A stretch of 43,926 nucleotides of DNA from NCBI GenBank assembly GCA_001642005.1, contig LWCA01000176.1:1-43926 (forward strand), read 5' to 3'. Source of the stretch: Intoshia linei (lineage: Eukaryota; Animalia; Orthonectida). Shown one piece after another: positions 697-29,400 of this stretch. Under the pieces are notes generated by a model. That model was given only the letters and a program-made list of their open reading frames with translations. It had not been told where the DNA came from and did not search any database. The position numbers were made by a program, and so were the translations under genes. How positions within the stretch are numbered: position 1 is the stretch's first letter; each line of letters starts with the position of its first letter.

Positions 697-2484
697 CTCT
701 TTCCCAAAAAATTTGATATAAAGTTTTCAGTAGCTTGTAAAATTCTATCAGGTCTAATAGCTCTGATTAAAATAAGTCGCTGAAAAGCGTCCATGTGTCT
801 ATCTAATCTATCAGGCAAGGGTATATTTTCAGGGTGTTCACTTTCACACATATATTTCCATTGCGTTTCTTTACCGTCACGCAAAATACGATCAAACGTA
901 TCTTTGAACCAATCAAAGTGAATTGCTAGAGTCTGTAAGTTATAAAACTGTTCATCAGTCATCCATTCAAAGCCTTTTCTAAGCAAAGAATATTTTGACT
1001 CTGTAGAATTCAGTTCAGTCATTACAGTTGCCGATAATGTAGGAGATACTAAATATTCTCGAAGTCCAGTTTGTATTTTATAAATAGTTGCAAAAATCTA
1101 TGGAATAAAAAAATTTAGTAAAATTTCAGACTCTAAAAAGTTTTTAGTAAAAACCTCTACTGCCAATAAAGTAACAAAAATAAATTTGTCTTTGGATTTG
1201 AGTAAAAGATTCATATTGAAAAAAGTTGTGTATGTAATTTTTTCTAAAACAGCCTTTTGAGAAGATCGTTCCGCGTATTTGGTAGAAATGTCCAAAATTT
1301 TAAAAAATTGATTTAAATTTATCTTGTACATTTCATCAATATTTTCCATGCTTTTGCAAACCCTATAGCACACGATAATTCGATCAATTAACATTGAATG
1401 GGATTCTTTAGATTTTTCCAATAATTTTATGCTATTTTTATTTTCTTCCAAACTAAAACAAATTTATACTCATCAAACTTGAAATTACGATGAGTTGATT
1501 TCATCGTATTGGTTTTTTGTAGATATAAGCATTTTTGACACACGTTTATCGTATAAAATTAAATCTTGATTCATCAACTCTTCAAGCATTTTGATTTCTA
1601 ATGATTTTAAAGATTCCCACATTGTTTTAGATTTCTAATTGATAAATTTACAATTAAAAATAATAATATTTTTTACTTGATGTAGCAATCCTTGCTCTTC
1701 AAATAGATGTAATTTTTCGTTTTTTATATATTTTCCAAAAAATAAAATGCGTAAATCACCTGAAGTCAAATTTATGCAAATTATATTCAACTGATGGACA
1801 AAGGAAGACGGCATGTCCATTTTAGATTCACAGGAATGTAAAATCAATCTAAATTGTGGAGAACAAACAATTTCACCATTGCTCGTCTAAAAATTTGATT
1901 TATATTAACTATTTTTATAATTTGTCATAAATTTACCGTTAATTTAAATTTCTGCTTATTTATTTTAAATTTATATTCATTATTCAAAATACATTGCAAC
2001 AAATCATTTTGGAGTAAATTATTCAGTTTTACATTATTAACTATCAGAATAAGTCCATCGCATAAGCACTTTTCCAAATTTTCATCAAAATCCTATACAA
2101 TGGTTTAATATAATAATTATAAATTAAAGTATTTGGATATATAAAAAATACATAGTAGTCAATGTAAATTGTTTCATGTGATTCCTTTAGTGATTCTGCC
2201 ACCCAATCTATAATTTTCAAATCTGAGTCAAATATTATAGGCCAATCTGTTAGTTCAATCGACAATTTGACCAGTTCAAAAGTTTCAACATAGACTGGGG
2301 GTATTTTATGATTAGAAAAATATTTACAATTAGATATCTAAATTATCATTATATTTTTTTACAAAATTAAATTACCGAAGTTAAAAAGTAACACAAACTA
2401 ATATCTTTAAATAAAAGTTTATTTGTATGAGGTATTTTTGAATCATTCAAAATTTCTGTAAATTCGTCGATTAAATTCTTTTTT
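697..2484 (-). CDS. Dynein AAA5 and following helical exons
   Basis: DWPIIFDSD; LEKCLCDGLILIVNNV; PQFRLILHS; EMYKINLNQF; FEWMTDEQFYNL; FQRLILIRAIRPDRI. Confidence 0.88.
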
Positions 2485-5400
2485 CTAAATTTTTTATTTA
2501 GATTGAAAAACTAGATTTATTTTTTAACATTTCATTCATATTCACTGTATAATTTGGTGAAAAACTCAGTTCAGATCAGTCTATTTTTAATTAAAAAAAA
2601 TCATCAACTTTAATAAATTAATACACCATTTCATAAGTAATACATTAACTTTATACAATGTGTGAACTAGGACCAACAGTCTCAATTATCATAGCTAAAT
2701 TGATAATTATATCAATTTCTGTCATCTTTTGGTCAATTTTTGGTGACCCAGTGTGAACCCATTTACAATACTTTCCACAAAAGTAATTAGAATAGTTTAA
2801 AACTCCAACCAAGTTATGAATCAACTTTTTTATAGGATAATTTTTAATATTTAATAAAGAGGTAACAGATGTTGGAATTTTATCCCAAACCTAGACGACC
2901 GCTACATTATTTTTTCAAAAATCTAATTTTTTATCCAAGAAAAAATAAATTTAATAAAAAATACAATTTCAAACCCTCATAAAAATATACGATTTTACCA
3001 AAACGTTTGAGAAACGTCTACTTAAATTAAAAATCCAATTTTACCAATGTTTAAGGGAAATATCCTCTTTTTTCAATATTATTTTTTGTGACAATCCGAT
3101 TTTACCAAATCTTATGAGTAACAACTTAATAATCCAAAACCCAAAATAAAAAATTAAATTTTACCAACGCTTAAGGGAAATATCCTCTTTTTTCAATATT
3201 ATTTTTTGTGAAAATCCGATTTACAAAATTTTATCAGTAACAACTTCTTAATCTCAAACCCAAAATAAAAAATTAAATTTTACATACGGTTAATAGAAAT
3301 ATCCTCTTTTTCTAATATTTGTTTCAAAAACACGATTTTACCAAAGCTTAAGGGAAATATCCTATTTTTTCAATATTTTTATTGTGATAATCCGATTTTA
3401 TCAAATTTTATAAGTAAAAACTTCTAAATCCAAACCCAAAATAAAAAATTAAATTTTACCAACTCTTAAGGAAAAATCTCCTTTTTCCAATATTTTTTTC
3501 AAAAAACACGATTTAACAACTTATAAGAAAAAACCGTTAATTTTTTCATAATAGTTTTATATTTTATGTTTCCTTTGAGACAAAAACATAATTATTTCGA
3601 AATGAGGGTCCGTACACTATTTGAATCGGGAACCACTGATTTAGAGACTGCAACGCTTTGATAATGTTTAAACATTTTCGTAGTGAGAATACAAACATTC
3701 GACTTTTTCATCAACTACTACAAAGACAGCGAAATTTTTAAGAATTATTTTATAATTCCTATATCTGAGAAAATATCCCAAAATATCTCGCGCCAACTAA
3801 ACTTATATTAAAGAAAAACTAAACAACTACATTAGCATTTTTAAGGGTCTGAAAGATTAATTGATTAAGTAAATTCTACCACACTATACATTAGTTTAAT
3901 TTTTTAATATTGAAATTACAAATTGTCTCGACAGCTAACAGCGAAAGTAATGTAAGCTGCTGCTAAGATGCAGTTATAGATCAAGATTTCGTTGCTATCA
4001 TACACTTCAATATATGCAGACCATTCTGCTTTTAAATTGGAAAATCTAAATGATAATAATAAATTTAGGATTCTTCAATTACAAAAATATACAAAAATCA
4101 TCCATTACTACTGTAGTTAAATGTATTTTTAGTCACTCTCTTGGTACAACACATTCATTATGCCATTATATATTTATATAATATAACTAGGACAATATAA
4201 TAAACTCTACAATAGTTAAGAAATAAAAAAAATTAATACTAAACTGCTTTTTTGACCAGGATGGTGTCATTTTGTGAAATTGAAAAGTTTTTCTATTTTA
4301 ACTGGAAATAACTATTACCATTTTAAAGCTATTGAGATATTTTAACAAGTTTTGATACCAGTTTATTTAAAGATACTGGGTATTCACAAAATACTTTAAA
4401 AATAATTAAATATAAATAGGAACAGTTTTCTGAAATACCGACACATATATGTTAAAAATGACCCTTTAATGTTTCAACTTTAAAAAAATTAAAAATATAA
4501 AATATTATCAAGTTAACCTTTGAAGCAAATCATTCAAGGTATTTAAACGAGTGCGTAAATCTTTTATTTTACTTCTCATTCCATCATTATCCTCTACACA
4601 AGAATCAAATTTATTTTGGAAATTTTCCATATCAGTAGAAAGAATTTGGTACGCATCTTGATCAAAAGAATTACTATCATCAATTTCAAAAATGCTATCT
4701 TTTTCATTCTATATTTTTTGATATTATGAAAATTCAATTGATCAAAAACCTGTTCATTTATCATTGTTTCATTCCCTTCTTCAATTTCCCAACTAAGTTC
4801 ATTTATACGATTTTTGATCATATCTATTTCAAGCTTTTCATGAGAATAATCTACCAAACTAATAATATATTCGAGAATTATTAATGCGTCTTCACTGGCA
4901 TGTTTTGCTTTTTCTACACTTAAAAAATGTTTATTTTCAATTGTAGGAGTGTGATGTCCTTCATTATTTGAGAAACAATCGGGAGAAATGTACATTTTAA
5001 CACCTATATCATTTCAATAAATATTAAAAAAATAAATACAGTCTTGGACCTAGAATCTAGGTCTTGTTAAATGATTAAATGATTGATATATTTTTTTATA
5101 AGAGCGAGACCATTTTATTATATTTAATAGAAAAACTACACCTTTTTATGGATTTATAGTTATTTTACTAATTTGAACGTTGCAAAAATTCCATTAATAA
5201 AACTTACATTTTATGATATCAGTTGATAAACCGTCCACCCAAGATATATTATACAACATGTCAACAAAGCGTGTCGAGTCACATACTATATTTTGTATAT
5301 TTGACCACTCCGTAAATAAATGAGCTGTATCTTTTCCAATTGAATCTGGTAGGTAAGTTGATTTTGAAGCTAACAATTAAAATTTAAATAATATTCTAAT

Positions 5401-8400
5401 TAGACTAATTAGTTAATATGAATAATTTACTAATTCTTGATGTCACTGAAGGTGAACCATCACTATATTTGGATGGCTGAGTAGGAGATGTAATTTTTTC
5501 AACAACAATTAAAGCTAGTTCCATAATTGAATGAACGACAGAAGGTGGAAATTGCAAATTTCTTAAATTTTCCACACATTGCCTGTTTATTTTGTTTAAA
5601 TTGTGTAATACCTATAACATTAATAATAATAATTGTCAAAATAATATAACCTTTTCTTTAAAATTTTCTAGTTGTTTATTACTTAAATCGATCGTCAATT
5701 TTTCATATTCCTCTGATAATTTTTTAATTCTCTTATCTTCCATACTCTTGTGAACACGATTAAATTCATCATCATATTCATCCATTTCATCTAATTTAAT
5801 TGATCCGGTAAAATGAAATTAAAATAAAATGTACCGTTTTCCGCTAAAAGAGAATCCGATTCTGCATCACTTCCAAGATCTTCCATTTTCAGAAAATCAT
5901 ATAAAGTATCATTGTCATCATTTAGTGCTTTCATATTTTCAATTTCTGAGCATTTATCGACCAATAATCTAAAACAATCCTCATTGTTGTTCAAAGATGT
6001 TTCGTATTTGTTATTAACTTGCTCCAATTCAATTTCCACTTTTTTAGATAGTTCAGACATATCATTAAGAGTACATATTGCTTTTTTAAAATTGTTATAC
6101 TTTGATTCTCTTTGTAAGCACATTTTTTCGTATAAATGTTTAAATATAATCATAAATCTTTTATTGTGAACTGAACAAACTGATAACGGTTTATAAATTT
6201 TGGCATTCTCATTTTTGTAAAATTTGTTTCTAAATTTAAATTTTTTTTAGTTTAAATTTTTTAAATATTACAAAATTTCTTCATTTAAAATTTTCTTTGA
6301 AAAGGGACCAGAATCGTTTCTATCATTTTTACTCTTTTCCAAGTCTTTATCATTATTAGTGTCAGTCATGAAAGATTTGTATAAAGATTTTTTATAAATA
6401 CATGAAGAAATATTTACAAAAACATCAATAACAAGTGATCTAAATTTTTTTTAAATTCACAAATTGTTAATTAAAATTATATTATACATTTTGTTTCACC
6501 CAATTTTTCCCCATATCAATAAAATCGATAAATCTATAAAATTGGATCAAAAAAACTGGCCTTAACACCCTACCGAATCTTAATCTAAAATTATCTTCAA
6601 AATCTTTAAAAATATTTAAAAATTGATTGAAAAAATCCCTTAAAACTCTACCACAGTTTATCTTTTTTTGATTGTTTAAAGTCAAAAAATAAATCATACT
6701 TTTATCAAATTTTTAAGAAAATATGCATTTTCGCCAAACCCTAAAGAAATGAATTAAATTTTATTATTAGTATGGTAAATCATTTTTGTTCAAATACATG
6801 TGTATTGAGAAAAAATTAATTTATGTTACAATATTGATTGTGATTTCCCGGGAAATGACAAAAGTCGAAAATCAGGAAAATAAAAATTAAATTTTCCGGG
6901 AAAAATAAAAAATTTTTATTCATATATAATATAAAAGCATTAAAAATATTAGAGACCTTAATTAATTTTAGCAACAAAAAGAAATTTTATTTGATTACTA
7001 GATTGAAATTTACAAATTTAATTAGAAAAAAATTTATTTATTTTAGATTGTTGAAAAAGTAAAAGAAAAATCGTTAGTAATTTGTGGTTGGAATAAGAGG
7101 TTTTTAAAAAGAATATTGGAAAAAGAATATTTTTCCATTAAGGGCTGAAAAATTAGATTTTTTTATTTGTGGTTTCATGAAGTGGATTTTAGAAAAAAAT
7201 ATCGGTGTAAGTCAATTTTTCCATGAGAGCTTGAAATGGTATTTTTGATTAAATTTTATTAGTGGTGGGATTTTTGAAATGGTAAATTTTAAATATTATA
7301 ATATAATCATATTTTCATAGTAGTAACAAACATAAATCAAATACAGGTATGTCTTATTTTTTTTCGGAAAATCCCGGGAATTTTGTCTCGATTTTTTCCC
7401 CGGCACAATCACTATGTTACAAAATTTAAAAATAAAAAATGTATATAAATTGAAAGATATTTTTAATTGTTAAGATTATTTTAGATTAGATCGTTTTTTA
7501 AGTCTTAGATCAGTGTTATAAAAATCAATTAATATTAATTATTACGCAGTTTCTTTTGATATCAAATTAGAATCATCGACAAGTTCATTTAGATTAATTT
7601 CATAAATAAATCTATTTTTATTAATATTCCAATCATCTATCCAAATACATTGACAATTTTCGACCAATGCAACGTAATTGCTGAAATTAATGAATTTTGA
7701 TAAATGGTATATAATTGAAAATACAAAATGTACCTGCATAAATTTTTTAATCCATCGCCAGAAATATTGACACTAAAGACCAAATGCAAATTTTTTAAAA
7801 CTCTAGTGATAAAAACACTTTTTAGTGTCTCTCCATTAAAGTCATTATGATTTAAATTAATAGAATGCGATAATTCCTAAAAATACAATCAAAAAAAATG
7901 TTATCATTTCTAAATTGAATGATTGAAATTGTATAATTACATCAAACAAACTTTTTAGTTCTTCTTTACTGAAGAGTTGATAATGATAACCATTACGAAT
8001 AATACAAGTAATCATGTCCCAAACACGCCAATCTGTAATTGAATCAGCCTGCAAAAATATATTAAAATTAAATTGTATTTTATAATTACAGATAAATAAA
8101 TTCCCAACGGAACTCCTTCAATACCACAAATTCTAATTGCTCTTCGAAATATGTCTTGCATACCTGTAAAATTCGTCGAAGTTAGGCATTTATCCCGTAT
8201 TCCTAATATTGCAAAAGAAATTCTGACAATTTCGGCAATATTTGAACCAGCATTACACATGAGCAACAAATTTCCACTAAAAGTTTTATACATGTAGTTT
8301 TATGAATGTACCTTCTTTCATAACTCAGTGTTCTAGTAATTTTTAAAATGTCTTCAAGAAAAACATTATTAAACTCGACATTTATTTCAACATTTCGAGG

Positions 8401-11400
8401 TAATTGATTGTATTGTTTCACAAATTCTCTAATAAAATTCAATTTAATAAAAATTGAAATAATGTTACATTATTGTACTCATCATTTCATCAGGTTCATC
8501 TACCATTTTCATTTGAGGCTAATTGTATAATATTAATCAATAAATAACAAAATGATGCAATTACTTTAAGTTTCTTTTCTCCATCCAGTATTAATTCATT
8601 TTTTATATTTTCTGTAGATAAAATTGAGAAATATTTATCTGTCATCAATTCAAGATTAGGAAAATTAGAGTAAATAATATGATTCAGTTTTTCATCAAAC
8701 CATTTATAATCCACCCATTGGCAAATTGACTAAATTTTAAATTATAGATATATTTTCCGTAATTGCCAAAATCGTGCCCATTTTCCTAATTTTTATAAAT
8801 GGATTTTCGTTACTAAGCATTTTATCAGTATAATCAAGTATACATATATATATATACAATAAGTATACAAGTATATAATATAACATACATAACTAGCTTG
8901 GATGTTTTGTACTTCGTACAAAGAGCACCAAGCTCTGCCCAGGGCGGCTTTTTTAATTTTACCAAAAAAATAAAATCTTAAAATAAAAATGCTACTATTC
9001 ACTATTACCAGTGTGTTAAATTAATAACTTCAAACGTGAAGATAATTTTTTATTTTTAAACTATAAGACGATTAATTATATCAAAATTTTTGTTTTAATG
9101 AAATAAGTAAAAAAGGTAAAAAGTAAATTGATTCCCTTAAAACCGTTTTTAAAATAGGGTAAAAAAACTACCTAAAATCCCTTGAAAATATGGTAAAAAA
9201 ATTTTTTGAATGCATAATTTTTTTAAAATTCTGAGACTACAGTGAGACTTGTTAATAATGAACCCTAAATGTCAGATTTTTGACAGATTCACTATTAAAC
9301 ATTTCTGTGATATAAATTAATATTTTAAGAAATTTTTAAATAATAAAGTTAATTTTATCTTATTAAATAAATTGGTACAATAGTAATTATAAAAATCGTT
9401 ATACCCATAATTTTTTAAATTGTTTTCATCCAATTTTTTAAAGATTTTAAAGACCCTTAAAATGTTAAAATTATTCCCTTAAATTCCCTAAAATTCCCTT
9501 AAAAATTCTACAAAATTTTGGACCCAAAATTATGTTTAAAATCTTTAAAAATTAAATGAAAAAATTTTCTCTTAAAGTTACACCCAAAAATTTAGTCAAA
9601 AAATTAATAAAATCAAAATTAAAAACAATTTTTTCTAAATTCATTATATTATGAATTTGAACAATTTGAATAAAATAACGAACTTCCATAATCTTTACAA
9701 AGGCGTATTTACAATCTTACAAAAAATCATTAACTATAGAAAATATGCATTATTGAGAGTGTTCATTATTGACGAGTCTGACTTTCATTTTCATTTTTTG
9801 AACAAATGGTAATCTGTGGTTTTGGCTCTAAAGATATTACCTTTTGAAATTTAAATTTTTTTAAACAATAGGATTTGTTTGATTTCCAAAAACAAGAATA
9901 ATTTTTGTTTTTGACCGGAAAAAATTCTAATAGAAATGTGGAATTTTTAAAATTAAAAAAATAAACGATGACAGCCAGACTAACAAAAATTTTTATATAA
10001 GTTAGTGCATTTGTACATTAGGCCTTATGCATTGAATGCAGATAAAATACATTAATATTATTAATGATTTTTGAAAAATTACATCTCTATAGACTCTATC
10101 CAATTCATGTTTCCATAAAGAAATGATAAATTCTTCGTTTTCCCACATTTCATTATTGATAAGAGACAAAGCCTAAAAAATGTTAATAAAATTTTAAAAT
10201 AAGCGTACATATATAACATGAGAAATTTGATGCAATGAAATGCTCATATATTGATATCGACCAGTTATATACATGGGTTTAAGCGTATCATTGACAGACT
10301 TGTAAATTTCAAATGTTGCATTTATAATTGTATTTAAAATATTGGGTACTACAAAATTTACAGATTTTTCGTTTGAAAAATAAATCTAAAATTAATTTAT
10401 TTAAAAAAATAAATTAAACTTAATTAACCGATTTAACTAATTTTTAAAATTATATAATAAAATATTATTTACTAGACTTTTTCCAAATATTATATTTAAT
10501 ATATCGTCGTCAGATAACTCTTTCATATATAAAACAATAAATTTGCGCTAAAATGATATTAAAATATATATTGTTTATTAATATACTAGCAATCTACTGG
10601 ATAATCGTTTTTTAATGGAATCTTTATTATATTGACTAAAAGTGGCACAACAGAAAAAGTTGATATCCTGTAATTTAATCATTTCAAACCTTTCATCATA
10701 CTGATACAAAAAATTATCACAAACTACTTGACGAATCAGCTAAAAATAAAAATTATATTCAGTTTACTGAAATCAGAGTCAAACCTACCATACCCTAGGC
10801 CTCGACTAAATTTTTGTAAGGTGGCCTTATTTTTTCAAATTCAACATTAAAATAATTATATTCCTGAATATATAAGTATTTTGTGTGGTAACTTTAAAAT
10901 TTCAAGTCAAAACGTTGCCTCAAAATCCTTAGAGAAGCGTTTAGTGGTTATCAGACACTATGTATCGTTTTAAAAAAAAATTTTAGGGTCCCATTTTTCA
11001 TTTTTGGTGACCTCCAGATTGATGGGTTCGGCTCTGACTAAAATAATTGAAACAGTGAAATTTAATTTTACTTCGAAAGGTGAATTTGAATTATTCATTG
11101 GCAAATGAAAATCGTCTATGAACATTGTTAAACGTTTTCCTTCTTTAGCTCCATAAATAAATCCTTTTCTGTGAACAAGTCCATTCAGAATATTTTGCTG
11201 AACTTGACGTGGGGTTATGAATTTTGAAAAATTTACATGTTTTGTAGCGTAATACATTTCATCTAATCAGAATCAGAATTTATAAGTTATTATTATTATT
11301 AATGAAATTAAATTTATATATTTGGAAATTTACAATAAATTTCATAAATTAATATACCAAAATTATTAATAATTTCATTGAGTAAATATGATTTTCCTTG

Positions 11401-14400
11401 AGCATTACTTCCAATAATAAAAACATTTGAACCAACATTATTAGCATATTCAGCTAGTGTTTTAATACACAACTAAATTATTCAAATTATTAACAGGGTG
11501 GACAACGCGCTCTTGATTTTCGGAAATATTTTAACTAGATTTAACTTTAATCATATTCTTGGAAGCAGTCAAAAATTACGCAGACCGGCAGTGGATAAAC
11601 GTTATACTAAATGGATTTGAATCTTAACCAGAGTATCAAATGCATACTATGCACAGTATTTTCATATAACTAGATACAGTGGTTTCTGTACAATATGAAT
11701 GTCAAGGGACCGGATATCTAGAATATTCATAACAGAGTTGGTTGTACAATATAAATATGAATTAAGAATCAAGTGAATAATAACACAAATGTATAAGTAT
11801 TTATTTTTGCAATAAAAAAAATAGTTTCTAATTCTGTTGCTATTTTCAATTTTTTCTTTTAAAAGATCTTTCTTTTATAATATCTGGTTTCATCACAGTT
11901 AAATATGTTATTAATTCTATATTTTTCTACAGCTTCAGAAAATAATTCTTTCCATTCTTTTATTTTAGACTCGCTTATTAATTTTGATTCTCCTACTATT
12001 TTTTTTTAAAAAAATTTAAACAACCAGTAGAGGCTTTAAAATCGTTCAAATTCAAAAGACTGGCAATTTCCAGCGCCTTTTCTTTCAATTTATTGCCACT
12101 TATACTTATATTTAATGTTGTTGACGTTGAAACTACTGATTCAATTTTCATACATTTCCTTAGGCGGTTGTCTCTTCTAATTCAAATTTAAATTATTACA
12201 ATTAAGAATTTCTTCACGATTTTTTAACAACTTATTTATCAAACCTACTGAAATTGAGTGTTTGGTGGCTAAATATTTTTGAGATCGATTTGAATATTCG
12301 TCAAACAGTTTAATCAATTTTATTTTATCATTTATCGAAAAATCTTTTTCTCTTCAAATTCAAATTCAAATTCATATTAAATGGTTACTTTTCTGAAATT
12401 TATAAGTCACGTGATAAAAAATTAATACAAATTTATGTTTATTTACACAAATTCATATTCACAGTTCACATTGAATGAAATTCATATTAAAAATTTTTTC
12501 TCATAATAAATACTATACAAATCTAACTTTTATTTTGATGAAATTCATATAAGCGTGAATTCATATTATACAGTATTCATATTAAACAGAAACCACTGTA
12601 TATCATTAAAAGGTAGAAAAAATATACAGATTTAATGAAGCGGGCCATTACGATGTTCCAAAAAATTTTCGTCTCATGTCACCCGAGTATTATTTTTATT
12701 CAAAATTGGAACACCTCAATTTACGATTGAACCAAATAATTTTCAAATTACCGTCTGGCTAGTTTCAATGAAATGAGAATTGGTGTTTCTTGAAGAAAAC
12801 GTGACTCCATTTTTACATTCTTCTAATTTTGATATCCAGGGATCCCACTCTCCTGTTTCGTCTACATAATAGTCATATATAGATATGTCGTGATCATAGT
12901 CTGGAAATCTAAAAAAGTTATTTTGTATAAATATATTATAGTAATACCGTATTCTCTCTAATACTCATCATTCTGGGGATTTAGAAAAAAATTTATAAAT
13001 ATAGAAAAAGTAGATAAAACCTTTAAATTCAAAGCTAATTTACAATAAAATTTAAATTGTAATACAAATTAATTAAATTCTATTTTATTAAAAATCCATT
13101 TTTAAAACTGAAATTAATTAATTAATTTTTTAATTAATAATTATTTTTTTAATTCATAAATATTTTCTAAAAATTATATTTGAATAAAGAAATTAATTTA
13201 CTCTATATTAAATCAGTAAATAGAATTCAATATAAGGACAATTTTTTGTTAGCATAATATCATATTCCTCTTTTTTAAATAAATTTATTATCAATCTGCC
13301 TTATTAAGCCTTTGTTTTTTTTTGCATTAATTAATTTATTTGAAACTTATATAAAATCGTAACTAATTTTGAAAAATGGTTTTAAAACTTTTAGTTTTAT
13401 ATTTTAAATCAATGGCGATCGAGATAATTGGCGAGTTATAGAGTTGGCTAGTTGTAGAGAGAATGTTGTAGTTAAGTTATAGATGCCCGACAGGGTCTCC
13501 CCAAAATTGTACACTGTATATTTAACCATTTATTATATTATATTCATTAGTTTAAAATAAACTAAAATCAAATTAATAATGATGAAAAATACTTTTAAAA
13601 TACCATATTTATTATTATTTAAAAAAAATTTTGAATAAAATTACACACTAGAAACTTTGGATAGTAAAACGTTGAACTTGACTTGATCAGTAGTTTCTAA
13701 CACAGCCGAATAAGTCCACAAAAGACAAAACAAAAATAATCTTTTCACATGTAAATCACCACCAAATTCTTTATTTTCTTTTAAAATGGATTGAAGCAAT
13801 TGGAGAAGTGAATCCATTAGTCCAATTTCGCATAAATGTATTCTTAATCTATTTGATATTAATACATGGTTTATAAATAAATTAACTGGCAATCTTCAAA
13901 AAGAAATTTGTTCACTTGAGGAATTATATTGTAAAATTCAACGGATAATATCTAAATAAAAATTTTATTTATTTTCCAACAAATTTTTCTCAAAGTGTCC
14001 CACGTGACCATATGGTACGATATGAAATTGTATGTATTCGAATATTACATACAATATAATGGACGAATTCTTTAATTAAAAAAAAAATTTCAAATACAAA
14101 AAAATGAATACTAAAGTGCTTTTTTGCTAAAGACCCTGAAGGCGTCACTTTGTCAGATTTAAATTTTTAGTGTGTGTTAACTGGATATAGCTGTTTCAAC
14201 TGCAATATTTTAAAAAATTCTAAAAATGTAGGACTATTTTAATTTTTTTAAATAAAGTAATATGGGGTTTTGATCGTGAACATCCACTTTTTTAAAGTTA
14301 TCATTTATAATAATGGTTATGGTTTTAAAAAATATTCCAGAATTTATGTTTTATAAAATTTTTGGGTGCATTGTGCTAATGTAAGGTAATTTGTGGTTTT

Positions 14401-17400
14401 GACCATGAAGGTGGCGTTTCTGAGGTGAGATGTACGACAACGTTAATGATTTTAAAAGGCGTCCAAGAATGTATGTTTTATTACATTTTTCGGCCGATTT
14501 TATTTTTAAACAAAAGGTCAAATTGGGTGTTTGACCCTGATGGACTGAAATTCGAAAAACCGAAAAAAAGATACCAACATCCCCGGTGCAAAACTTTACT
14601 AAAAATTAGTGTGTTTTAAATTCTACAACAGTTGTAGTTAATTACAAGTTACTGTTAATTTTTTAAAGAGAATATTCTTAAACATACCATTTTTACTAAA
14701 ATTCAAATATTTTGACTTAAATCTAACCATTTTTACTTAAATCCAATTATTTTTATTAAAATTCCAGTTTTACCAACCTTTAAGGGAAAAATCCACTTTT
14801 ATAAACCTCTAAGGAAAATTCCCAATTTTTTATTATAAAATTATAGTAAAAATAGTTAGATTTAAGTAGAAACCCAAGGATGTTATTGATTTGCCATTGA
14901 AAATACTTAGAAAAAGAGGAAGACCAATAAAATCATCTAATAAAGCAAATACAAAATATTTCAAAGACATAAAAATGCATAATGAATAAATTTTTATTTA
15001 TTTCGTTTTAAAAAGTTTTCTTTGTTTCATCATCAGTTTAAGTAATCATTAAAGCGTTTATAACTTGTTTATCACTAATCTTTCTATTTGAGAACTTCAT
15101 TTTGTTTTTTTTTGATATTGAGTTGTTATGGGATATTCCGCAATTCTGTAAAACTGGATTTTTCCCTTAAAGGTTGGTAAAACTAGAATTTTCCTTTAAA
15201 GATTGTTAAAACTGAATCTTCCTTTTAGTGTTGGTAAATTTTAATTTTTAGTAGACACCGTTTTTTAAATATAGCATAACGCACACACACAGACATTCAA
15301 GTTTATAAAAGTAAAGGATTTATCAGTTCCGCCGATAAATTTCTAATTTTATTAACAAAATACATACAATACATTGGATGAAAATGTTCAAAACTAAGTC
15401 ATCTCGTTGTGACTGAGATTAACTTAATAAAACTCGAATAACTGTTGATAACTCTGTCACTTCTTTGGCAGCTAAGATTTATTTTAAAAGTACAGTGAAT
15501 TCTTTATAACTCTATCAAACGCTGTGGAACACAATTGTCACAAATCACAATCGAATTTAATGAATATACTTAACGTTTTTAACAATATATATAATTTAAT
15601 TAAATATACGTGCATTTAATATTAATTTAATATATTATTTATATAATTTAATAAATGATCACCACCTGCATATTTATTGAAAAATGGCTCTTAAACGTGT
15701 ACCAGTAGAACAATTCTTTGGAAGACTTAAAAAATCCTTCAAGATATTATTTTTTTTATTTTTAAAACTCACTTAATTCAGCTTTTTTTCCATTGGGTGA
15801 CAATTTAAATTTTTCAACGATAGCCACAATTTTAGGTAAACTTTGTTCTGAATCTTATATATTTTCGAATAGTAAAATTTTTATCTTTTTGTTGGATTGT
15901 TAGACGTTTTTATCAAACAAAGATTTAGATCAAAATTCTTTCATTTTTCTGAGCCCTGAACAATTTTATGTACTATATTGTTTAGTTTTTTAGTGTAAAA
16001 ATTATAATTTATTCACTGGTGCGTATAAATAGAGTAACTAGATTATGCTATGTTTATTTTTTATTTTAGATATTATCTGGTGTTTACACATACGACAGAA
16101 TTCACTTTGACATTGATTTCGATATATGTGTACTATTAACAAATGAATTAATATCAAGAAACGCCTTAAATGAAATGGATCATACGTATGAAATCTTACT
16201 CATGTCTATCAGAAGAGATCGAGAACGAGAAAAAACGTTGAAGCGTAAACAATCTGCTGATCGTTACCGGGAAAGATCTTCTATGAGAAATGAATTGGAT
16301 AATTCATTATCCAGTCAATATAGTGACATTATGTATTAAATTTTATTGTGAACCATTATTATTGTATTGCATTCTTCGTATATTTTAAAAAAGTTTCACT
16401 GCATCTATAAAATCTGTGGTCATTTTATATATTTATATCACATAGTCTTCCTCTAAAAATGTACGGTTTACTGTCCTATTAAATACATTTTTGATCTAGT
16501 TTTGACACAATTTCGTTAAACTCTATTTTCAATTAGATCTGCTTTTTGATTTGTTGATTTTTTTCTTTTTAAATTATCAAATTATGGAGCTTTTTTTCTG
16601 TTGACCTCTCATACCCCCATAGATTATAAAATGTATATTTTAAAACAAATTTTATGTTGTGTATATTTTAAAAAAAAATTTTGTTTTGGTTTACAAAAAT
16701 GTATGATTAAAATGTTAATATCTATTGTCTGACTGTATAACATTTTGTTATTATGATAAAGATAATTTCCAAACAGTACATCTTAGTTGCCAAAAAAGTG
16801 ACAGAGTTATAAACAGTGAAAATTTGTAATTGTCAACTTAACTATGGTTTCAAAAGTTTCATCCATTAAATATTATTAGTACAATATTATTGTAATTTAT
16901 AAAAAATACTGACTGTACTTGAAGAATTTGCTACATTGCTAAATTGACCGAAAATAAAAACATTTCCTTTATATTTTGATTAAAAATTAAAAATTCCAAT
17001 TACGATGAATTAAAATGTATTACGTTTCGTATGTAGTTGGTTTGTTTCTTCAACCATGAGTATGCCAAAGAACTCCAACCATTTATAGAACCATCAAAGT
17101 AAATTATTCCCTATTTAATAATTATTAAAAATATTGTATTATAGATTATTACCAAGTTGCATTTTGGTGATAAATTATCCAAATTATCCGTTTCATACAC
17201 AATCCTTATTGAATTTGAAATATTTAAATATTCTCCATTTTTAAACATAATTTTCTAAATTACAATAAAAAAAAGTAAAATTATTAATTCAGATTGTTAA
17301 AAATTTAAATAGAATTACACAATTTTTTTCAAAAATATTATTTAAAAAATCTAGACTTTGATTTGTCATATCGCCATCAATAGAAAGCCATGAAATAATT

Positions 17401-20400
17401 TTATTCTGTAAAAATGAAATAATAAGTATTAATAAAATATAAATAAACCTTTTTAAGTTTACGAATAACGGTATTAACAAATCCATCGATATATTTTCCA
17501 TTTTTATTAATATACCCGTACATTTTATCTTCCGAATCCCATGACCGAGAATATACACTAATTAACCGATGATGGTTTCTATTTGTGTCGTTTTTATTAA
17601 GATTTGTTAATGCACTGGTAACCGCTTTTAAACATGTTGATTTTCCTGTTCCAGCTCTACCCAATAAAATAATACCTAGAAAAAGCATAAGTTCAGAAAT
17701 ACACTATGATATACCATGATATATATTGGACAATTCATTGATTTGATTGCATTTTTCTAACCAAGCGTCAGTACTTTGCAAGTTTTGATTACGGGTATAT
17801 TGCTTTAAAAACGATTCAAAAATAGAGACGTCACTTTTGTTCAAATCAACTACACTTTTTACAGATACATTGGATCGTTTGAACGTTGAAACTTCATTAA
17901 ATATCTCATCCACAATGGATAAATATAATTTCTTGTTCTAATATTTTTTATAATGTATATTATGAATAATTTAACCAATTCAGATAGCTTTGTCGTTATA
18001 ATGGAATTGAAAAACGTTTTTACAATAACCAATTCCTGTTTTATAGTGAAGTAACCAGTCTCAAGCATTGCTTCCGTGTTGCTAACAATTGAATAACGAG
18101 GATCAGTCGTTTTATACTTTTTAAGATTTTTACTTTTAGATTTCACAGAAATGATTTGATTTAATAATTCTTTAATTGAATATGCAACAAAATGAACCAT
18201 ATCTTTAGGAAAAATATTTTTGGGCCTAAAAAATATAAATTTAGAAATTCAAATGTATTACATCAGTTGTTGGCAAATATTAAACAAGTTAATCAGTTTT
18301 GAAGCGATAATTAGAGAATTTCTGAAACCGGCCTTACATATAATTAATCTAACTAACATAAATGGTTCATGTTTTAATAAAGATATCCTTCTATAACTTT
18401 CATTTTTCAGACCAACAACGTCCTTTTTTATAGATGATGGAGTCATAAAAAAAAACGCGACATTAGAATTCTAAAATTATATTTTATGCAAGTAAGCTTT
18501 AGAAATACCATAGTCAAATTATCGCTTTCTTTGTCAAAATTCATTACAGATACAATCGTCATTGGTACAGTACTAGAGTTTTTAGAGTCTGATATGCAGG
18601 AATTTGATTTTTGTAATTCCAAATTGAAATTAGTAATGTTATGTATAACGCAAGTTAATGTGTTGAACAATATTTTGCTATATTCTTGATCGTATTTGAC
18701 TATATTTTTAAATAATAGCCAATCACCTCGCTATTTAATTAAAAAAATAAAATAATCAAATAAAAAAATTAAAATAGATTAAAATACATTATAACAAAAA
18801 ATCAAAAAAATAAAAAAGAATTACTATTGTAGCACCATGAATTATGTCCTTGACAAATTTTATAGTCGGATTTATAACTAAATCGCAAATTACTAATGGT
18901 TGTCCAAAAATGTATGCCAGTGTCTAAAATTATCAAAATTTTTAAAATTAAAAACGTTTAACACTATGCGTATGATAACATTTGAAATTTGTTAGCATTT
19001 TTATATTTTCCAACTATATGAAGTACATAACACGCATAGTGATTTTAAATTATTTAAAATTTTTAAAATGTCTAATAAATGTTGAACCTTGATAGTTTCT
19101 TGTTTATATGCCATTTGTGAACCAGAAACTATTAGGGCTGGGCAATGAGAAATGGATTGGTAAATAGCAAATGTGCTGGACTCAAATTGTGACCCAAAGG
19201 CCATTCCTGTATCAAATCCATAAAATTCATAACCATAGTTGAATTTGCGGTCAATGCATTCTATATCTATTGTACCTAGAGCTAATTAAAATAAATAATA
19301 CTATAAAGTCGATTTAAATACCGTCATTATGGTAAATTCTAATATTTCGTTTCCATTCAAAATCACTTATATCTTTTATTTTTTTAATTGGTAAACTGTC
19401 CATCATATCGCGGTAATAATAGGAAATCTAAGTAATAAGTCATTATACTAAAAATAGACTTTTATTGAGATTTATTCATAGGTCGAACATTCATCGGAAA
19501 ATAGCAGGGTCTACATTTTACAGCGTATACCTGAAATGAATGTCAAAATTTTTATATATTCTAGCCTTTCTAAATATCAACTGGTCATCCTTTACATAAT
19601 CATTAGGATAAGTTTTGTCAATAACATAAATTCTTTTCAATGTACAACTGAATTTCAATGTTCATTGTAGAATACACGAATGTGAGTTTAAAAAATATTT
19701 TAGTCAATTTTAGACAATTTCTATTTGACGTAATTTAAAACCTCATATAACGTCGATTTTCAACCCCCACAAAAGGCTTTTGGTGCACGGTAAGTTCGGC
19801 TCATGGGAAAAATTTTCGATAAATAAATTTGTACAAATGTATCCATTGGAATTTATCTGTAATCCTATAAAAACTTTTATTTTGTCAAATGTTTAATACA
19901 GAAGTGATATTTCAAAATACGTTTTTATACATTCTCACAGAAAAACAAAAAAAACATGTGAATGTTAGTAAAAATAGCATAGTAGAAAACTTTAATTTAT
20001 TTATTCATAAGTTCAAAAAAAATATGTCTAATAATTATTAAATTAAATTATAATTTAATTTTATAAAATTACAGCAATCAAATTATTTAGCCGACGTAGC
20101 TCGTATATAGATGACAGTGTATTTTCATTTTTTGTTATTTCAGCCATATGTGATAGGGTATTAATCATTTTATTTATATAACCATTGAATTTTCGAGAGG
20201 CATATAATAAAGCTTTTCGTTCATTTTTTAATTCATTAATTCCATTTTCAGCTTCTTTTGTCCATAAATTAATTAATCCAAAAATACACACTTGGCATAT
20301 CCACTAATATAAATTAATCAATAATTTTAAATGTGTCTGAAATATATATGGGAATTTCAAGGGGGAAAACAAGGGGGAATTTTACTGTTTGAAGGGGGAA

Positions 20401-23400: not shown

Positions 23401-26400
23401 AAAAAAATTCATTTGGGGGTTTGAATATGAAGATGTAAGTTTCTGAAGCTGAGATTTACGCCAATAGTAATATATGGATAGATTCGTCTTTTAAATGCGT
23501 TCTACGTTCTGTAACGAAATTAGAAGCAGTAGAGAAATTTCTTTCATTTTGTGTTGACGTAGGTTGAACGGACATAAGGGCTTCCTTTAATTTTAACAAT
23601 CTTGATGATAGCGTTCTAGTTCGTAACGATTCATAATATTTTTCAAAATAATATTGCAAAAAAAGGATAGTTCCTTTAAGCGTTAGTAATTTGTGATTAA
23701 AATTCATATTCCAACTTTGAATAATAGGTTTTTAAAAAAAGTATTGGAAAAAAAATATTTTTCCATTAAGGGCTGGAAAATTAGATTTTTTATTTGTGGT
23801 TTGATGAAGTGGATTTTTTTCATAAGATTTCGTATAATCGGATTTTTGAAAAGAATATCGGTGTAAGTCAATTTTTCCATGATGGCTTGAAATGGTATTT
23901 TTGAGTAAATTTTATTACTGGTGGGATTTTTGAAATAGTAAATTTTAAATATTATAATATAATCATATTTTCATAGTAATAACAAACATGAATCAAATAC
24001 AAATATGTCTCAATTTTTTTCGGGAAATCTCAGGAAATCGTAAAAATCCCGGGGAATTTTGTCCCGGTTTTTTCTTCGGCACAATCACTACTTATTATAT
24101 GTATTTAGTAATATTTTTGATGAAGAAATACTCAGAATCACAATTAATAGGATTATCATCACAAAGAAATGTATACCTTGTTTAAGAACAGCAATTCTTC
24201 TTTGTCTAAGCTTATAATACTATCGAAACTAACAGTTTCAGTTTCGCTATTTACATGTCTCTAAAAGAATAGTTTGTTATAATCAAAGTATATTTTTATA
24301 TATAAAAATAATACCGTTATATTTGGACGGTTAGCCTAAATAAAATAGTTTAAAATTGAATACTTAAAATTTAAAACATGCCCTATACAATAAACTTTAA
24401 TGTTACGGGGCATAATTTAAATATAAAATTAAGCATAAATTAAAAGCAAACCTTGCGATAATTAAATAAAAGCTAAAAATATATTTTAGATAAAGCAAAA
24501 GAAGCATAATGATATATTAATGAATAAATAAACAAACCCCTAAATCGAATACAGTAGTTTTGTTTTCAATCGCCATTATTGAAGCTTTGTGTGTATTTTC
24601 CACAGTTTTAGTTGAAAATGTATCCAAATTTGGAAATATAATTCTTTAATAAACAGAATAAGATTAATAAATCACTTAATTTCACATACAAATGTAAAAA
24701 TTAACTAGTTATGAAAATTAAATTATAATGTAAAATTATAAAATTGGTTAGAATTTGGAATATTCATAAAATATGCAACGGAAAATTTCAAAGCTTAAAT
24801 ATTTCTTTCTTCTTATTTGAATTAAAATTTGATTCAGATTTGAACACTCATTTCAAAAATGGACTATTAATTTAAATTAAATTTTAAATACCTTAGATAA
24901 GTTATAATTTTTTCTAATTTTTTTTCTGCACTCAAAATAATTAATAAGGTTTTATTATTAACATAATAAAATCTAGGCTGTATCAGTCTTTTTGAGTTTA
25001 TATACTCTGATAAACTCACAGCACACAAATTTAATTTTTCTTTGATGTTGTTCAGCAATGTAGATTGTTTAATATCTCCATCAATGCAACACTAGAATAT
25101 TTTTAAAAAATACACCATCAATTTATAATTTATAATATTATTTTTTCAATTAAAATTACATGTAAAACATTATTGTTTTCCAATGCTTTCAACATGATCC
25201 ATCTCCATTTATTATCAGCAAATTCCAATATTTTGAAAAATGTTTCAAGTTTCTAAATATAAAAGGTATATAAATTTGTTATTATAATAATTTATTCAGA
25301 TATTGTAATATAACAATAACAGTAATATAAAAATTGGAAAATTTACGTTGGAATCATATTTCGTTATAGAAGAATTTAATTGAAGTGACCTAATAGGATC
25401 GAAACTCTTCCATAGAGTTTGAACCTCTAACCATAATTCTATTATGTATCCAACATCTTTCAACTTTTCAATCCACACGGATGCCTGGTTTGCCAATATT
25501 CCACCGTGTACAGGAGATATGATTGAGTACAATTGTGATTTAGATTCTTCAATTTGTTGTAATATAGATTCAGTGCATTCAATGTTCAATAAATGAATTT
25601 TGTTTGCATCTTTTTCTATTATAAATATCTAAACGGCTCATTATATTATATAATAAATATAAACTTGTTCAGTCCACAATTCTTCTGTAGAGTGTATGCA
25701 TAATTCAAATTCTAATTCTATTTTGGCTTTATGGCATATTTTTAAAATTCCGTTCTTATTTCTAAATTTTTTTTAACAAAAGTTATACATGTATCATTAA
25801 AACTATTTCTGGATAGTTTTTAAATTGGGACTGGATTTTTTTTAAAATATTAAAATATTTTTAATATTTTTATCATTTTTATAGTTAATCACCAATAATA
25901 AAGATATTTAATCTCAGTAATGATTTAAAAACAGTTTTAATGCAAATTAAATCATTTGGTAGTTATTAAGGTCTGTACCGGCGGGTATGAACCGGAATAT
26001 ATCAACCCGTATAGAACTGTAAAAGGCTAAGTCAAATTTTACATGCATTATAAATATTCTTAATTTTGAAATTACACTTCAAATTTATCAAAAACCGGAA
26101 GATGGCATCAGTAACCGAACGTATATCTGGTCCATGTAAAATTAATAAAATTATTACCGTAACGTTGGATATTATATTAATCTATAAAAATGGGAATTTA
26201 CTCTAAAATTGAAATATTTAGCAAATTTCCCAAGCAAAAGACATTTTCTTCCAACAAAAATGAAGAATTAGTTACATTCATGATTTCTAGCCATCGCTTA
26301 TTAACAATTTCCTAATATAAATTTGATTTATTGTAAGTGTTTATAAAACCTTTCTAGAGAGTCTCTCTAATATTGGCAAGATTTTTCTATACATGTCTAT

Positions 26401-29400
26401 TGATTCCTTTAAATTTTTAAACGATTTCCACTTTTTTAGTTTACTGGGTAAAGCCAAACATTGATCCCAAAAATCATCAATCTAATATTATAATTGATGT
26501 GTAAATAAAAACCAAATTTTTATTATTTTTCAACACCACGAGTTAACAATATTTATCATAATCAATCTTTTTGAATAGATCATAATTTAAATGTAATTGC
26601 TGAAAAATGTTACCTTATGGGAAGCATTTTGTAGATTAATATCTTTCCAAAGAGTGATTCTGAATATTTGATCAAAATTAATATAATTTTGATATAAATT
26701 GTAGAGACATGTAAGTAATTCAATTTCCTATATTATTAGAATAATATTAATATAATAATAATAATGTAAATAATAAATAATTTGAAATTTGTAAATTATA
26801 AGTACCTCGCCAGTTCTGTCCAATTCATGAAATGATGGATATATTTTTCCAAAAAGAAAACACACTGAAACAATCGTTTTCTTTTCATCGTTCAATTTAT
26901 TATATAATTTGGTATATTCTACTAATCTATTTACAGATTTTGTTGGGCTTATTCCTTCTTTACCAGGTCCACGAATGTCAAATGAATTTCTGAAACTAAC
27001 AATTTCTACAATGAACGACTAAGATTGTATGATTAATCAATATTGTACAATTAACCTTAATTTGTTTATCCAATAATTCTTCAAAAGATTTTCTATTATG
27101 TATTAAGAGTTCTTCTCTAACAAATTCAATTAATTTCATTAAAGATGTCCAATTTTCTCGTAAAGTATTCAACTCAGAAACGTCCACAATTGATATTTGA
27201 TTTGTTAAATGTCTATAATTTAAAATGCACTTTTTACATTGCTGTAATGTTATTTATAATAATACATTATGTAATATTATGTGTATTACTTATTATTATT
27301 ATAACATTTATATCATATAAATACCGAATTTCATTAAAATTATCTTCAATTGGTTTATATATAGAATCACAAATAATATCTCTATTTCTCAATTCTTCAA
27401 TCAATTTTAAAGTATTATTCAGTTCGAACAACGATTTTACTGGTCTTATGATTTGATCTTGACAATCTTTTCTGAAATTTACAGCCTCGTATAATAATTT
27501 CTAAATAAAACCAATTATACCACTCGGTCAAAGCATACATCATACTTTAATATTTTATGTTTAGTAATATATTTAACGTGAAATATATAAAAAAAATGTA
27601 TTATTTTTTTACTATTTTTCAAAATAATCGGTTATCCTTATTTATATAATATTCTACGTGATTTTTGTTTGTGTATGTGTGTTCCATTTTATTTAAATAA
27701 CCACCCGTCTTAGAAATTTATAAAGTCAACGTTTCAATTACAGTTTTTTCCGGGACATATAATAAGATAAATTTCAACCTCCCAATCACATCTTACGGGT
27801 CAAACACCCACATTGTCCTTTTTTTTGAAAATATAACGAGTTGGAAAATTTAAAAAAATATATACGCTGATATGGATTTTAAAATCATAAACATTATCAT
27901 AAATTTAAATTTAAAAAAATTATATTTTCAGGCCAAAACTCCAAATTACCCTTTTTTTTTTAATGAAAACAGAATTATTAAACATAAACCCTAGAATTTC
28001 AAAAATTTACAGGTGGTACAGTTGTATCCTGTTAACACACACAAAAAATTTCAAAGTACAGTTGTATCCTGTTAACACACATAAAAAATTTCAATCCGAA
28101 TAAGTGACGACCTTCACGGTAAAAAAAGCATTTAATTCATATATTTTTTTCCGAAGTATTTTATTGAATGATTAACAAAAAATGTGAAATAATTTATTTC
28201 ACATATAATTTTCATACATTTTTACAAATAATTAACGTTCCGAAAATTAAAAACAAAAGATTATTCTGATAGAGCTTATTCCAGTTGATATATCAAAAAA
28301 GTTCAACCCGAGAAATATACGCATTCCCGATGAAAAATAATTTTTAATATATTATCAAACCAATATTTTTCGATGATTAAAAATTTATGTTCCAAAAAAT
28401 TAAGATGGAATAATTCAATTTAAAGTAAAAAGTAATGTGATATGATGGTTCCACCTGAAACAAATTAACCACTCTTTTATAGGATTGATTATAGTGAATA
28501 GTATTACTATTAGTATTAGTAGTATTAGTACTTAACATTATTATGAATTTTTAAGTTAGAATTTCAACTAGAATTTATTTTTTAAGTATAATAAAAATGT
28601 GCTCTCGGCAGAGCTAGGTCCTGTTTGTACGGAGTAGATAGCAGTCAATCTAGTTCGGGTATAAACTGTGAAGATGCAAGTTTTTTTGAGTTTTAAAACA
28701 AATTTTTTTAAAACATATTTTTTTCATAATAATTTAAAGCGGGTTTTTAGGCAAATTTTTTTATCATATTTTAAAGTGGGTTTTTAAGGAAATTTTTTTA
28801 CAATATTTTAAAGAAGGGTTTTTAGGTAAATTTTTGATATCATATTTTAAAGCGGGTTTTTTAAGGAAATTTTTTTATAATATTTTAAATATGGTTTTTA
28901 GGTCAATTTTTTTAATCATATTTTAAAGTGGGTTTTTAAGGAAATTTTTTTACAATATTTTAAAGCGGGTTTTCAAAAGGGTTGGCAATTTATCGAATAA
29001 ATTTTTTTTGAAGTATCAAAACTAATTTAATCTCTATGATTCATTTAAAGGTATTTATTTTATTTTATTTTATTATTATGATCGGTTTTCATTTCTTGTC
29101 TTTCGAAAATTGATAATTCATATACTAACGTTTTTAATATTTTTTGTGTGTTATCTGTATATAACTGTATCGGCGAAGACATCAATAATATGATATAAAT
29201 TAGTAAAATCGATGATTATGTCGCTCTATGATGTATCGCTCCAACAATACATCGTTAATTTGATTTGATTTGATTTTAAATTAGTTTAATTTTAATATAT
29301 ATGCTCCTAATATTTAAAAATAAAAAGATTCAATAATTATCTAATCAAAACCTTTAAAGTATTGATAAAAGTCAAAAGTAGCATTTTTACGCATAATTTA

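Follow-up and report, generated by a model that had tools for sequence, protein, structure and literature searches.

The minus strand of the 43.9-kb contig LWCA01000176.1 of the orthonectid Intoshia linei (43,926 nucleotides, analyzed at its full length and called the window here) is filled by one highly divergent dynein heavy chain gene. We consider it very probable that this gene is the animal's single ortholog of DNAHX, i.e., a non-motile dynein heavy chain derived from the DNAH5/8 (gamma-type) lineage. DNAHX is a non-motile heavy chain subfamily, described in January 2025, that arose in early animals by a duplication of the outer-arm DNAH5/8 type (bioRxiv 10.1101/2025.01.18.633724).

Organization of the dynein heavy chain gene

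The contig belongs to an assembly of 41.6 Mb with a G+C content of ca. 25%. The start codon was located at positions 42052 to 42054 (MDKRHIWLI...), where the protein opens with an N-terminal signature common to all family members as MDERHWWI, and the Pfam domains found on the open pieces of the minus strand are arranged as one would expect of a dynein heavy chain, with weak matches (Table 1). The DHC_N1 piece scored 78 bits to DNAHX versus 52 bits to gamma chains, and the exon at the boundary of AAA5 and AAA6 scored 155 bits, with 53% identity, to the DNAHX protein of the annelid Owenia fusiformis, versus 57 bits for the best canonical gamma chain. The AAA_6 (AAA1) Pfam signal on single exons, at 18.4 and 17.8 kb, stayed below threshold, and the pieces of the stalk, AAA4, and AAA5 had no Pfam match at all, so that single-exon Pfam searches did not help to classify the gene. 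The N-terminal open reading frame (ORF) of 257 codons matched none of the solved structures.

The 3' part of the gene runs past contig position 1, near the start of AAA6, and ca. 590 to 690 C-terminal residues lie off the contig. The model is therefore incomplete and covers the equivalent of residues 1 to 4681 of the sea urchin DNAHX protein. A genome-wide search for the missing C terminus with the flatworm fragment P0002 and the Pfam domain PF18199 did not find it in the assembly. Contig C1347 was rejected as a candidate, being weakly canonical-like and not DNAHX-like, and contig C1837, which was checked for the same purpose, yielded nothing.

TABLE 1 Features of the window and copies of its repeats elsewhere in the genome
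Feature	Position	Strand	Evidence or motif
DNAHX-type dynein heavy chain gene	1-42054	-	Pfam domains in order; 49 open pieces collinear with DNAHX
First coding exon region, N-terminal tail	41332-42054	-	blastp, 57 bits to Owenia DNAHX residues 1-177
Tail, DHC_N1 region	31142-31894	-	PF08385, E = 3e-11 and 3.5e-8
Linker, DHC_N2 region	24870-25628	-	PF08393, E = 9e-13 and 8e-7
Late linker, AAA1, and AAA2 (12 exons)	17024-20273	-	Spliced RNA contigs
Exons 1 to 6 of 12	20073-20273, 19322-19427, 19088-19281, 18825-18923, 18509-18730, 18261-18470	-	RNA
Exons 7 to 12 of 12	17976-18224, 17711-17937, 17449-17671, 17319-17405, 17152-17254, 17024-17109	-	RNA
GMAFGSQFESST	19172-19207	-	String quoted by the sequence-only reading, found
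AAA1 Walker A remnant	19100-19123	-	GSQMAYKQ (canonical GPAGTGKT)
AAA1 Walker B remnant	18701-18721	-	WLLFKNI (canonical WGCFDEF)
AAA1 sensor I remnant	18438-18455	-	FFFMTP, Asn to Thr
AAA1 sensor II remnant	18171-18194	-	HFVAYSIK, Arg lost
AAA2 P-loop, intact	17638-17661	-	GRAGTGKS
AAA2 DGD motif, intact	17367-17390	-
AAA2 arginine finger region	17153-17173 plus next exon	-	LSPKCNL(G), SR of SPATVSR deleted
Dynein AAA lid	13644-13895	-	PF17852, E = 2.6e-8; 78 bits to DNAHX
AAA3	10581-11472	-	PF12775 (AAA_7), E = 4.5e-11 and 7.5e-5, pieces at 11.2 and 10.7 kb
AAA3 P-loop, relaxed	11389-11412	-	GSNAQGKS
AAA3 Walker B	11099-11125	-	MFIDDFHLP
AAA4	7626-8299	-	Degenerate Walker A CNAGSNIAE (8231-8257); CIWIDDWN motif (7626-7649)
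AAA4S PS2i insert	6271-6348	-	Helix GPFSKKILNEEIL; tblastn with PS2i segments of DNAHX members
Stalk and microtubule-binding domain, DNAHX type	4597-6246	-	Alignment; no PF12777 match
Helix H1	5501-5551	-	FPPSVVHSIMELALIVV
Helix H3	5227-5280	-	DSTRFVDMLYNISWVDGL
AAA5 end and AAA6 start	651-1463	-	LILIRAIRPDRI at 741-776; best-conserved exon
pogo/Tc5-type transposase remnant, decayed, intronic, antisense to gene	33461-34706	+	HTH_Tnp_Tc5 and DDE_1, overlapping pieces in different frames
pogo/Tc5-type transposase remnant, decayed, intronic	11862-12353	-	HTH_Tnp_Tc5, E = 2e-6; three open pieces
hAT transposase dimerization-domain remnant, intronic	23459-23731	-	PF05699, E = 5e-4, below the curated cutoff
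Repeat copies in the window	43477-43590, 39113-39277, 35885-35986, 27789-27904
Repeat copies elsewhere	C2808 (L003/L030); C1397:24262-24374

AAA1 and AAA2 motifs

Motif positions were taken from an alignment with the canonical dyneins of the genome, which have uninterrupted AAA1-AAA2 ORFs, and with 33 outside references. An earlier reading of the window, made from its letters alone (the sequence-only reading), had claimed that the AAA1 site has lost every catalytic element. The motif strings that it quoted can all be found on the minus strand, exactly where it had put them or close by, and all five AAA1 elements are changed; the claim goes too far in one respect, as the Walker A lysine remains. 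Walker A keeps only its first glycine and this lysine, and in Walker B the canonical WGCFDEFNR has become WLLFKNIVK, so that the acidic pair is gone. The sensor II arginine is replaced by lysine in the MAFFT register, or by serine in the register of the sequence-only reading.

With the Walker B acidic pair, the sensor I asparagine, the sensor II arginine, and the arginine finger all missing, AAA1 is predicted from its sequence to be incapable of hydrolyzing ATP, and, with the glycine-rich loop destroyed, it is probably unable to bind nucleotide as well. The structural ATP site of AAA2 is preserved. A six-frame scan of the window found no G-x-x-G-x-GK[ST] pattern besides those of AAA2 and the relaxed one of AAA3, and no DEFNR-type Walker B near AAA1. 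No alternative exon can therefore mend the AAA1 site, which disposes of an objection that the sequence-only reading had raised against itself (an exon supplying GPAGTGKT or DEFNR). The AAA1 profile PF12774 misses the gene altogether, and the same profile detects at least 12 further dynein loci of the genome, each with a good AAA1 domain.

Two length differences were also seen in this region. Compared with canonical dyneins, there is an extra stretch of ca. 19 residues after Walker B (NFNLELQKSNSCISDSKNSST..., exon 18509 to 18730, minus strand), and the small domain of AAA1 contains an insertion of ca. 28 residues after sensor II (exon 17976 to 18224, minus strand), a place where other DNAHX members also carry inserts.

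Transcription, splicing, and reading frame

The gene is transcribed and correctly spliced, and its frame is kept open in the stretch covered by RNA (17024 to 20273). Spliced contigs of 9.1, 3.1, and 8.1 kb from three RNA runs (X2, X3, and X4) cross the AAA1-AAA2 region. The introns that they skip are 36 to 645 nucleotides long and are bounded by GT..AG on the minus strand, and none of these joints occurs in the DNA run X1; the median intron of I. linei has been reported as 57 bp (PMC6543705). Once joined, the 12 exons form a single frame of 669 codons with 0 stops (58 and 78 stops in the other two frames), in which ca. 57 stops would be expected at this base composition (P = 7.5e-27 for none by chance). 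The splicing deduced in the sequence-only reading is thus confirmed by RNA, as is its statement that the translated exons contain neither stops nor frameshifts, and the same contigs answer the question of transcription that it had left to be checked. The 9.1-kb contig reaches ca. 7.4 kb downstream of position 17024, which is ca. 1.8 kb beyond the coding capacity of the window, and, by length alone, this excess (ca. 600 residues) would fit the absent C-terminal part.

Every domain other than AAA4 (31%) retains 49 to 82% of the family-invariant positions, with overall identities of 21 to 47%, and this retention is similar to that of the DNAHX protein of the rotifer Seison. Together with the 669-codon frame, the ordered pieces over ca. 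4,600 residues, and the long spliced transcripts, it is evidence that the gene is maintained.

Placement in the DNAHX family

An exhaustive search of 1.84 billion proteins with a single exon as the query (651 to 1097) returned, as its top full-length matches, dyneins of 4,856 to 6,307 amino acids with 37 to 46% identity and 79 to 107 bits (51% for a shorter fragment), coming from reedfish, a caecilian, the sponge Sycon, amphioxus, a cephalopod, the rotifer Seison, and a monogenean flatworm. The gamma chain of the same genome gave ca. 31% identity and 56 bits by local blastp, a score that is only roughly comparable. A second search, with the caecilian protein as the query, recovered the whole family, all with more than 860 bits and separated by a clear gap from canonical DNAH5/8 proteins, at 390 bits or less. 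The family thus recovered spans cnidarians, a sponge, echinoderms, hemichordates, tunicates, molluscs, an annelid, nemerteans, fishes, and amphibians, and includes the DNAHX type protein, XP_041462850.1.

Along the window, 47 of the 49 open pieces had a better score with DNAHX than with canonical gamma chains (summed bits, 2,339 versus 1,005), and the 49 are collinear with DNAHX from residue 1 to ca. 4553 to 4681. For the trees, the pieces were added as fragments to an alignment of 33 full-length references and merged into one row. The resulting protein is 27 to 31% identical to typical DNAHX members, 19 to 22% to gamma chains, and 17 to 18% to other classes. In the LG+G4 tree (2,581 columns), it falls inside the DNAHX clade, which is the sister of the gamma clade, with 100% support in the Shimodaira-Hasegawa-like approximate likelihood ratio test (SH-aLRT). 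There, its neighbors are Seison and Argonauta, a join flagged as a long-branch one and untrustworthy; when these long branches were removed, the LG+C20 posterior mean site frequency (PMSF) tree (19 rows by 861 columns) still placed the window within the DNAHX clade, with 100% support. The approximately unbiased (AU) test rejects a grouping of the window with the gamma clade (delta lnL of 412, p = 5.6e-7).

Discrete characters agree with the trees. Among 110 diagnostic columns that are invariant in DNAHX and conserved differently in gamma chains, the window has the DNAHX state in 43 and the gamma state in 13. At the sequence level, the PS2i insert matches the conserved P[YF]SKxI/LxxExI helix of the family, at a place where canonical gamma chains are gapped. 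An extra CC1 segment is seen in the stalk, and the microtubule-binding domain (MTBD) shows an H3 signature of DNAHX type (DSTRFVDMLYNISWVDGL), a Ser/Thr/Pro-rich stretch before H3, and a short H5 insert of ca. 14 residues; these insert lengths are approximate, as the exon boundaries here are homology based.

Two canonical outer-arm genes of the DNAH5/8 type, C1397 and C2101, are also present in the genome, each with more than 1,200 bits to human DNAH5. The paralog for which the sequence-only reading had advised looking thus exists twice, and the gene in the window is not the working gamma chain of the organism. Matches between it and C1397 keep the same order, with only 20 to 48% identity in short blocks. 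In the reciprocal test, the flatworm DNAHX fragment P0002 hit the window contig with 111 bits and every other dynein locus of the genome with 40 bits or less, which makes this contig the only DNAHX-type locus of the genome.

The searches also gave some observations on the family at large. In the precomputed Pfam lists, PF12777 (stalk and MTBD) is missing from DNAHX members and present in every canonical DNAH5/8 match, so that the family can be recognized in databases simply by its absence; the members are labeled DNAH5-like, DNAH8-like, gamma chain-like, or "uncharacterized." Protein P0086 (4,481 amino acids, ENA), of normal length, branches basally in the DNAHX clade (100% support). Its Walker A (GPAGTGKS), its sensor II (YDFGLR), and its arginine finger are retained, the Walker B glutamate is lost (FDNLH), and the protein may be an early-branching or intermediate form that tells which AAA1 change came first.

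AAA1 degeneracy across the family

In the motif table, three states are fixed in every DNAHX member, namely, the loss of the sensor II arginine, the loss of the NR after DEF, and the retention of the AAA2 P-loop. Walker A, the Walker B acidic pair, the sensor I asparagine, and the arginine finger vary among members. The Walker B glutamate is lost in Owenia, vertebrates, amphioxus, Sycon, and rotifers, and all of the variable elements are lost in the window, Seison, and protein P0044. AAA1 is also the least conserved domain throughout the family, as seen in the comparison of Owenia with the sea urchin (43% identity, versus 51 to 69% for the other domains), and it is again the lowest in the window, with 21% identity to the family consensus. 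Poorly conserved and variable AAA1 motifs, as well as insertions in the stalk and MTBD, had already been described for DNAHX (bioRxiv 10.1101/2025.01.18.633724).

Alternative explanations

The closest paralogs within the genome are the gamma-type C1397 and C2101, and, among solved structures, DNAH5, a DNAH8-like chain, and gamma chains come nearest, with DNAHX not among the structure matches for the exons tried. One could therefore think of a lineage-specific, degenerate duplicate of the animal's own DNAH5/8 that lost AAA1 independently, a new pseudo-ATPase unrelated to DNAHX. This resemblance to gamma chains is, however, expected, because DNAHX is the sister of gamma, and the AU test, the 47 of 49 pieces favoring DNAHX, the inserts found only in DNAHX, and the common N-terminal signature largely refute such an origin, to which we give very little credence. 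A decaying copy that is transcribed and spliced without yielding a useful protein would account for the divergence of AAA1, for a bloated gene (at least 42 kb, versus ca. 17 kb for canonical gamma genes) with transposon-bearing introns, for the C terminus missing from the assembly, and for the very long terminal branch. Such a pseudogene should not have kept 669 codons free of stops, ordered open pieces over some 4,600 residues, most domains with about half or more of their invariant residues (AAA4 being the exception), and long spliced contigs in three runs, nor the AAA2 P-loop, the DGD motif, the AAA3 GKS, and the PS2i helix; besides, a degenerate AAA1 is the norm in this family and no sign of decay. 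We regard this explanation as improbable, if slightly less so than the preceding one.

An ortholog of DNHD1, the other divergent "orphan" dynein with a defective AAA1, would likewise lack the Walker B catalytic residues and carry insertions, and DNHD1 was not represented in our trees. Nevertheless, none of the best relatives among the 1.84 billion proteins bears that name (they are called DNAH5-like, DNAH8-like, or gamma-like and cluster with XP_041462850), DNHD1 and DNAHX are reported to be without specific sequence homology (bioRxiv 10.1101/2025.01.18.633724), and the gene has DHC_N1 and the DNAHX N terminus, which together leave this the least probable of the alternatives, with almost no weight. 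As for a working motor that hydrolyzes ATP at another site, such as AAA3, or with non-canonical residues of AAA1, the GK[ST] P-loops of AAA2 and AAA3, the DD Walker B of AAA3, and the surviving Walker A lysine of AAA1 could be invoked. All five AAA1 elements are altered, though, and stepping is hard to reconcile with the PS2i lock and the MTBD inserts; no dynein is known to move without hydrolysis at AAA1, and we find a motor of this kind hardly credible.

Several points weigh against the assignment to a maintained, non-motile DNAHX. The terminal branch of the window (1.3 to 2.0 changes per site) and its skewed amino acid composition make its position inside the DNAHX clade unreliable. The RNA runs are assembled contigs from one 2024 study, which tell that the transcript is present and spliced, not how strongly or in which tissue it is expressed, and the exon boundaries outside 17024 to 20273 are homology based, so that a stop or frameshift may exist there. 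The functional model of DNAHX comes from one preprint, and the cap at the C terminus (CT-cap) that PS2i should bind lies within the 590 to 690 residues absent from both the window and the assembly. Last, the "ATP-locked" part of the published model cannot apply to this protein, as the AAA1 P-loop is gone.

Functional interpretation

In the sea urchin, PS2i, located in AAA4S, keeps hold of the C-terminal cap and fixes the motor in its pre-powerstroke state, the insertions in the DNAHX stalk and MTBD are thought to weaken microtubule binding, and DNAHX has been proposed to carry or inhibit other dyneins within a heterodimeric dynein-X, or phi particle (bioRxiv 10.1101/2025.01.18.633724). By analogy with this sea urchin work, the protein encoded in the window would be a rigid, non-stepping, dynein-shaped scaffold in a pre-powerstroke-like form. 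It might then join a second heavy chain to form an autoinhibited phi complex, as suggested for the family, and such a complex would let axonemal dyneins be carried or held inactive during the assembly of cilia and flagella. A role as scaffold, brake, or regulator in cilia or sperm, which is what the sequence-only reading had proposed for a maintained non-motor dynein of the gamma/DNAH5-8 lineage, matches the published DNAHX account, and the trees, the AU test, and transcription bear out the lineage and the maintenance; the role itself would follow from the family.

Since an ATP lock is excluded by the loss of the P-loop, any lock here must be structural. We put forward, as a tentative and rather doubtful proposal, that the I. 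linei DNAHX has moved past the ATP-locked state, with an AAA1 that binds no nucleotide in a gene that is nonetheless open and expressed. If this were true, nucleotide in AAA1 would be dispensable for DNAHX function and the lock would be purely structural (PS2i plus CT-cap). DNAHX has been linked to the sperm of broadcast spawners (bioRxiv 10.1101/2025.01.18.633724), and its presence in an orthonectid would then suggest a core role in ciliogenesis that extends beyond such sperm.

The novelty of the gene is low, as it is an ortholog of a family already described in 2025 and no new class of system. The novelty implied by the sequence-only reading is lost in this way; it had foreseen that placement in a known divergent class would have this effect, and such a class exists, although it is DNAHX and not the DNHD1 it had named. 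Non-motile "pseudo-motor" dyneins are a very recent concept, with DNHD1 tied to DNAHX by analogy. To this concept, the locus adds a well-documented DNAHX member with RNA-verified exons from a drastically reduced genome, and AAA1 is dismantled in it more completely than in any other seen so far except the Seison protein and P0044. While AAA1 decays, conservation persists in the AAA2 site, the PS2i helix, and the H3 signature of the MTBD, which points to the features that carry the function. The placement also corrects the DNAH5-like, DNAH8-like, and gamma chain-like labels of family members.

Transposons and repeats in introns

The introns contain the remnants of three transposases, two of pogo/Tc5 type and one hAT (Table 1); the sequence-only reading had likewise described neighboring transposases as decayed. 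These remnants sit in long introns, and the adjoining introns of the dynein gene are only 36 to 64 nucleotides. Short interspersed repeats, 60 to 85% identical when translated, occur in the introns of this gene and of other dynein loci and look like an unclassified repeat family of the genome.

Other dyneins in the genome

Contig C241 (L009:1204-3990, plus strand) codes for a second dynein with an altered AAA1, whose nearest structures are the inner-arm chains DNAH3, DNAH12, and DNAH7 (318 bits). Its Walker A reads GPTATGKK, its Walker B SELDR, its sensor II YNFGLENL (Arg to Glu), and its arginine finger INQCG, and it may be an inactive inner-arm heavy chain. A third, highly divergent dynein fragment is found in C3117 (L028:1642-3156, plus strand), with only a weak AAA_6 match (E = 4e-6) and an AAA2 P-loop GPIFTGKS. 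No solved dynein matches it with more than 40 bits, and it could be DNHD1-like. A weak AAA_6 match in C2443:42001-52000 was discarded, since it belongs to midasin (Rea1), with an uninterrupted frame of ca. 3,968 codons, and is not a dynein.

Comparison with known systems

Canonical gamma chains (human DNAH5, mouse DNAH8, C1397, and C2101) form the sister clade and have the same architecture and domain order as the window protein. They differ from it in having intact AAA1 motifs (GPAGTGKT, DEFNR, TMNPGYAGR, YDFGLR, and SPATVSR), no PS2i, no CC1 or MTBD inserts, a PF12777-positive stalk, and compact genes, as C1397 and C2101 have tiny introns and span ca. 17 kb, versus at least 42 kb for the DNAHX gene. 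The DNHD1 family (human Q96M86) is also divergent, with a defective AAA1 and disordered insertions, and is needed for flagellum formation, but it has a different origin; it lacks the Walker B catalytic residues and shares no specific sequence homology with DNAHX (bioRxiv 10.1101/2025.01.18.633724).

Within the DNAHX family, Seison nebaliae KAI3387039.1 (6,307 amino acids), P0044, and Rotaria P0223 are fast-evolving members with a degenerate Walker A like that of the window, lost in the first two and altered in Rotaria. Complete loss has thus occurred more than once in the family. These proteins are much longer and have other insert lengths. That the LG+G4 tree groups them with the window is probably due to long-branch attraction. 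The best matches of the window gene are proteins of annelids, molluscs, nemerteans, and flatworms, and the best single one is CAH1799095.1 of Owenia fusiformis (5,241 amino acids), which, like the window, lacks the Walker B glutamate (DD). Unlike the window, it has an intact Walker A (GQTGVGKT) and retains the Asn-Pro of sensor I as well as the arginine finger.

The reference for the family is the DNAHX of the sea urchin Lytechinus variegatus (XP_041462850.1, Chai et al.), with 5,272 amino acids in a family of ca. 5,100 to 5,500 and annotated as "DNAH8-like" (bioRxiv 10.1101/2025.01.18.633724). The window protein belongs to the same clade and shares with it the N-terminal signature, the intact AAA2 P-loop, the loss of the sensor II arginine and of the NR after DEF, PS2i, the CC1 and MTBD insertions, and the negative PF12777 result. 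The sea urchin protein, however, keeps a working-looking P-loop (GGTGVGKT) and the Walker B DE and holds ATP, whereas the window has lost the P-loop, the DE, and the arginine finger; its MTBD and H5 inserts are shorter, and it evolves ca. 5 to 7 times faster, with a terminal branch of 1.3 to 2.0 versus a median of ca. 0.3.

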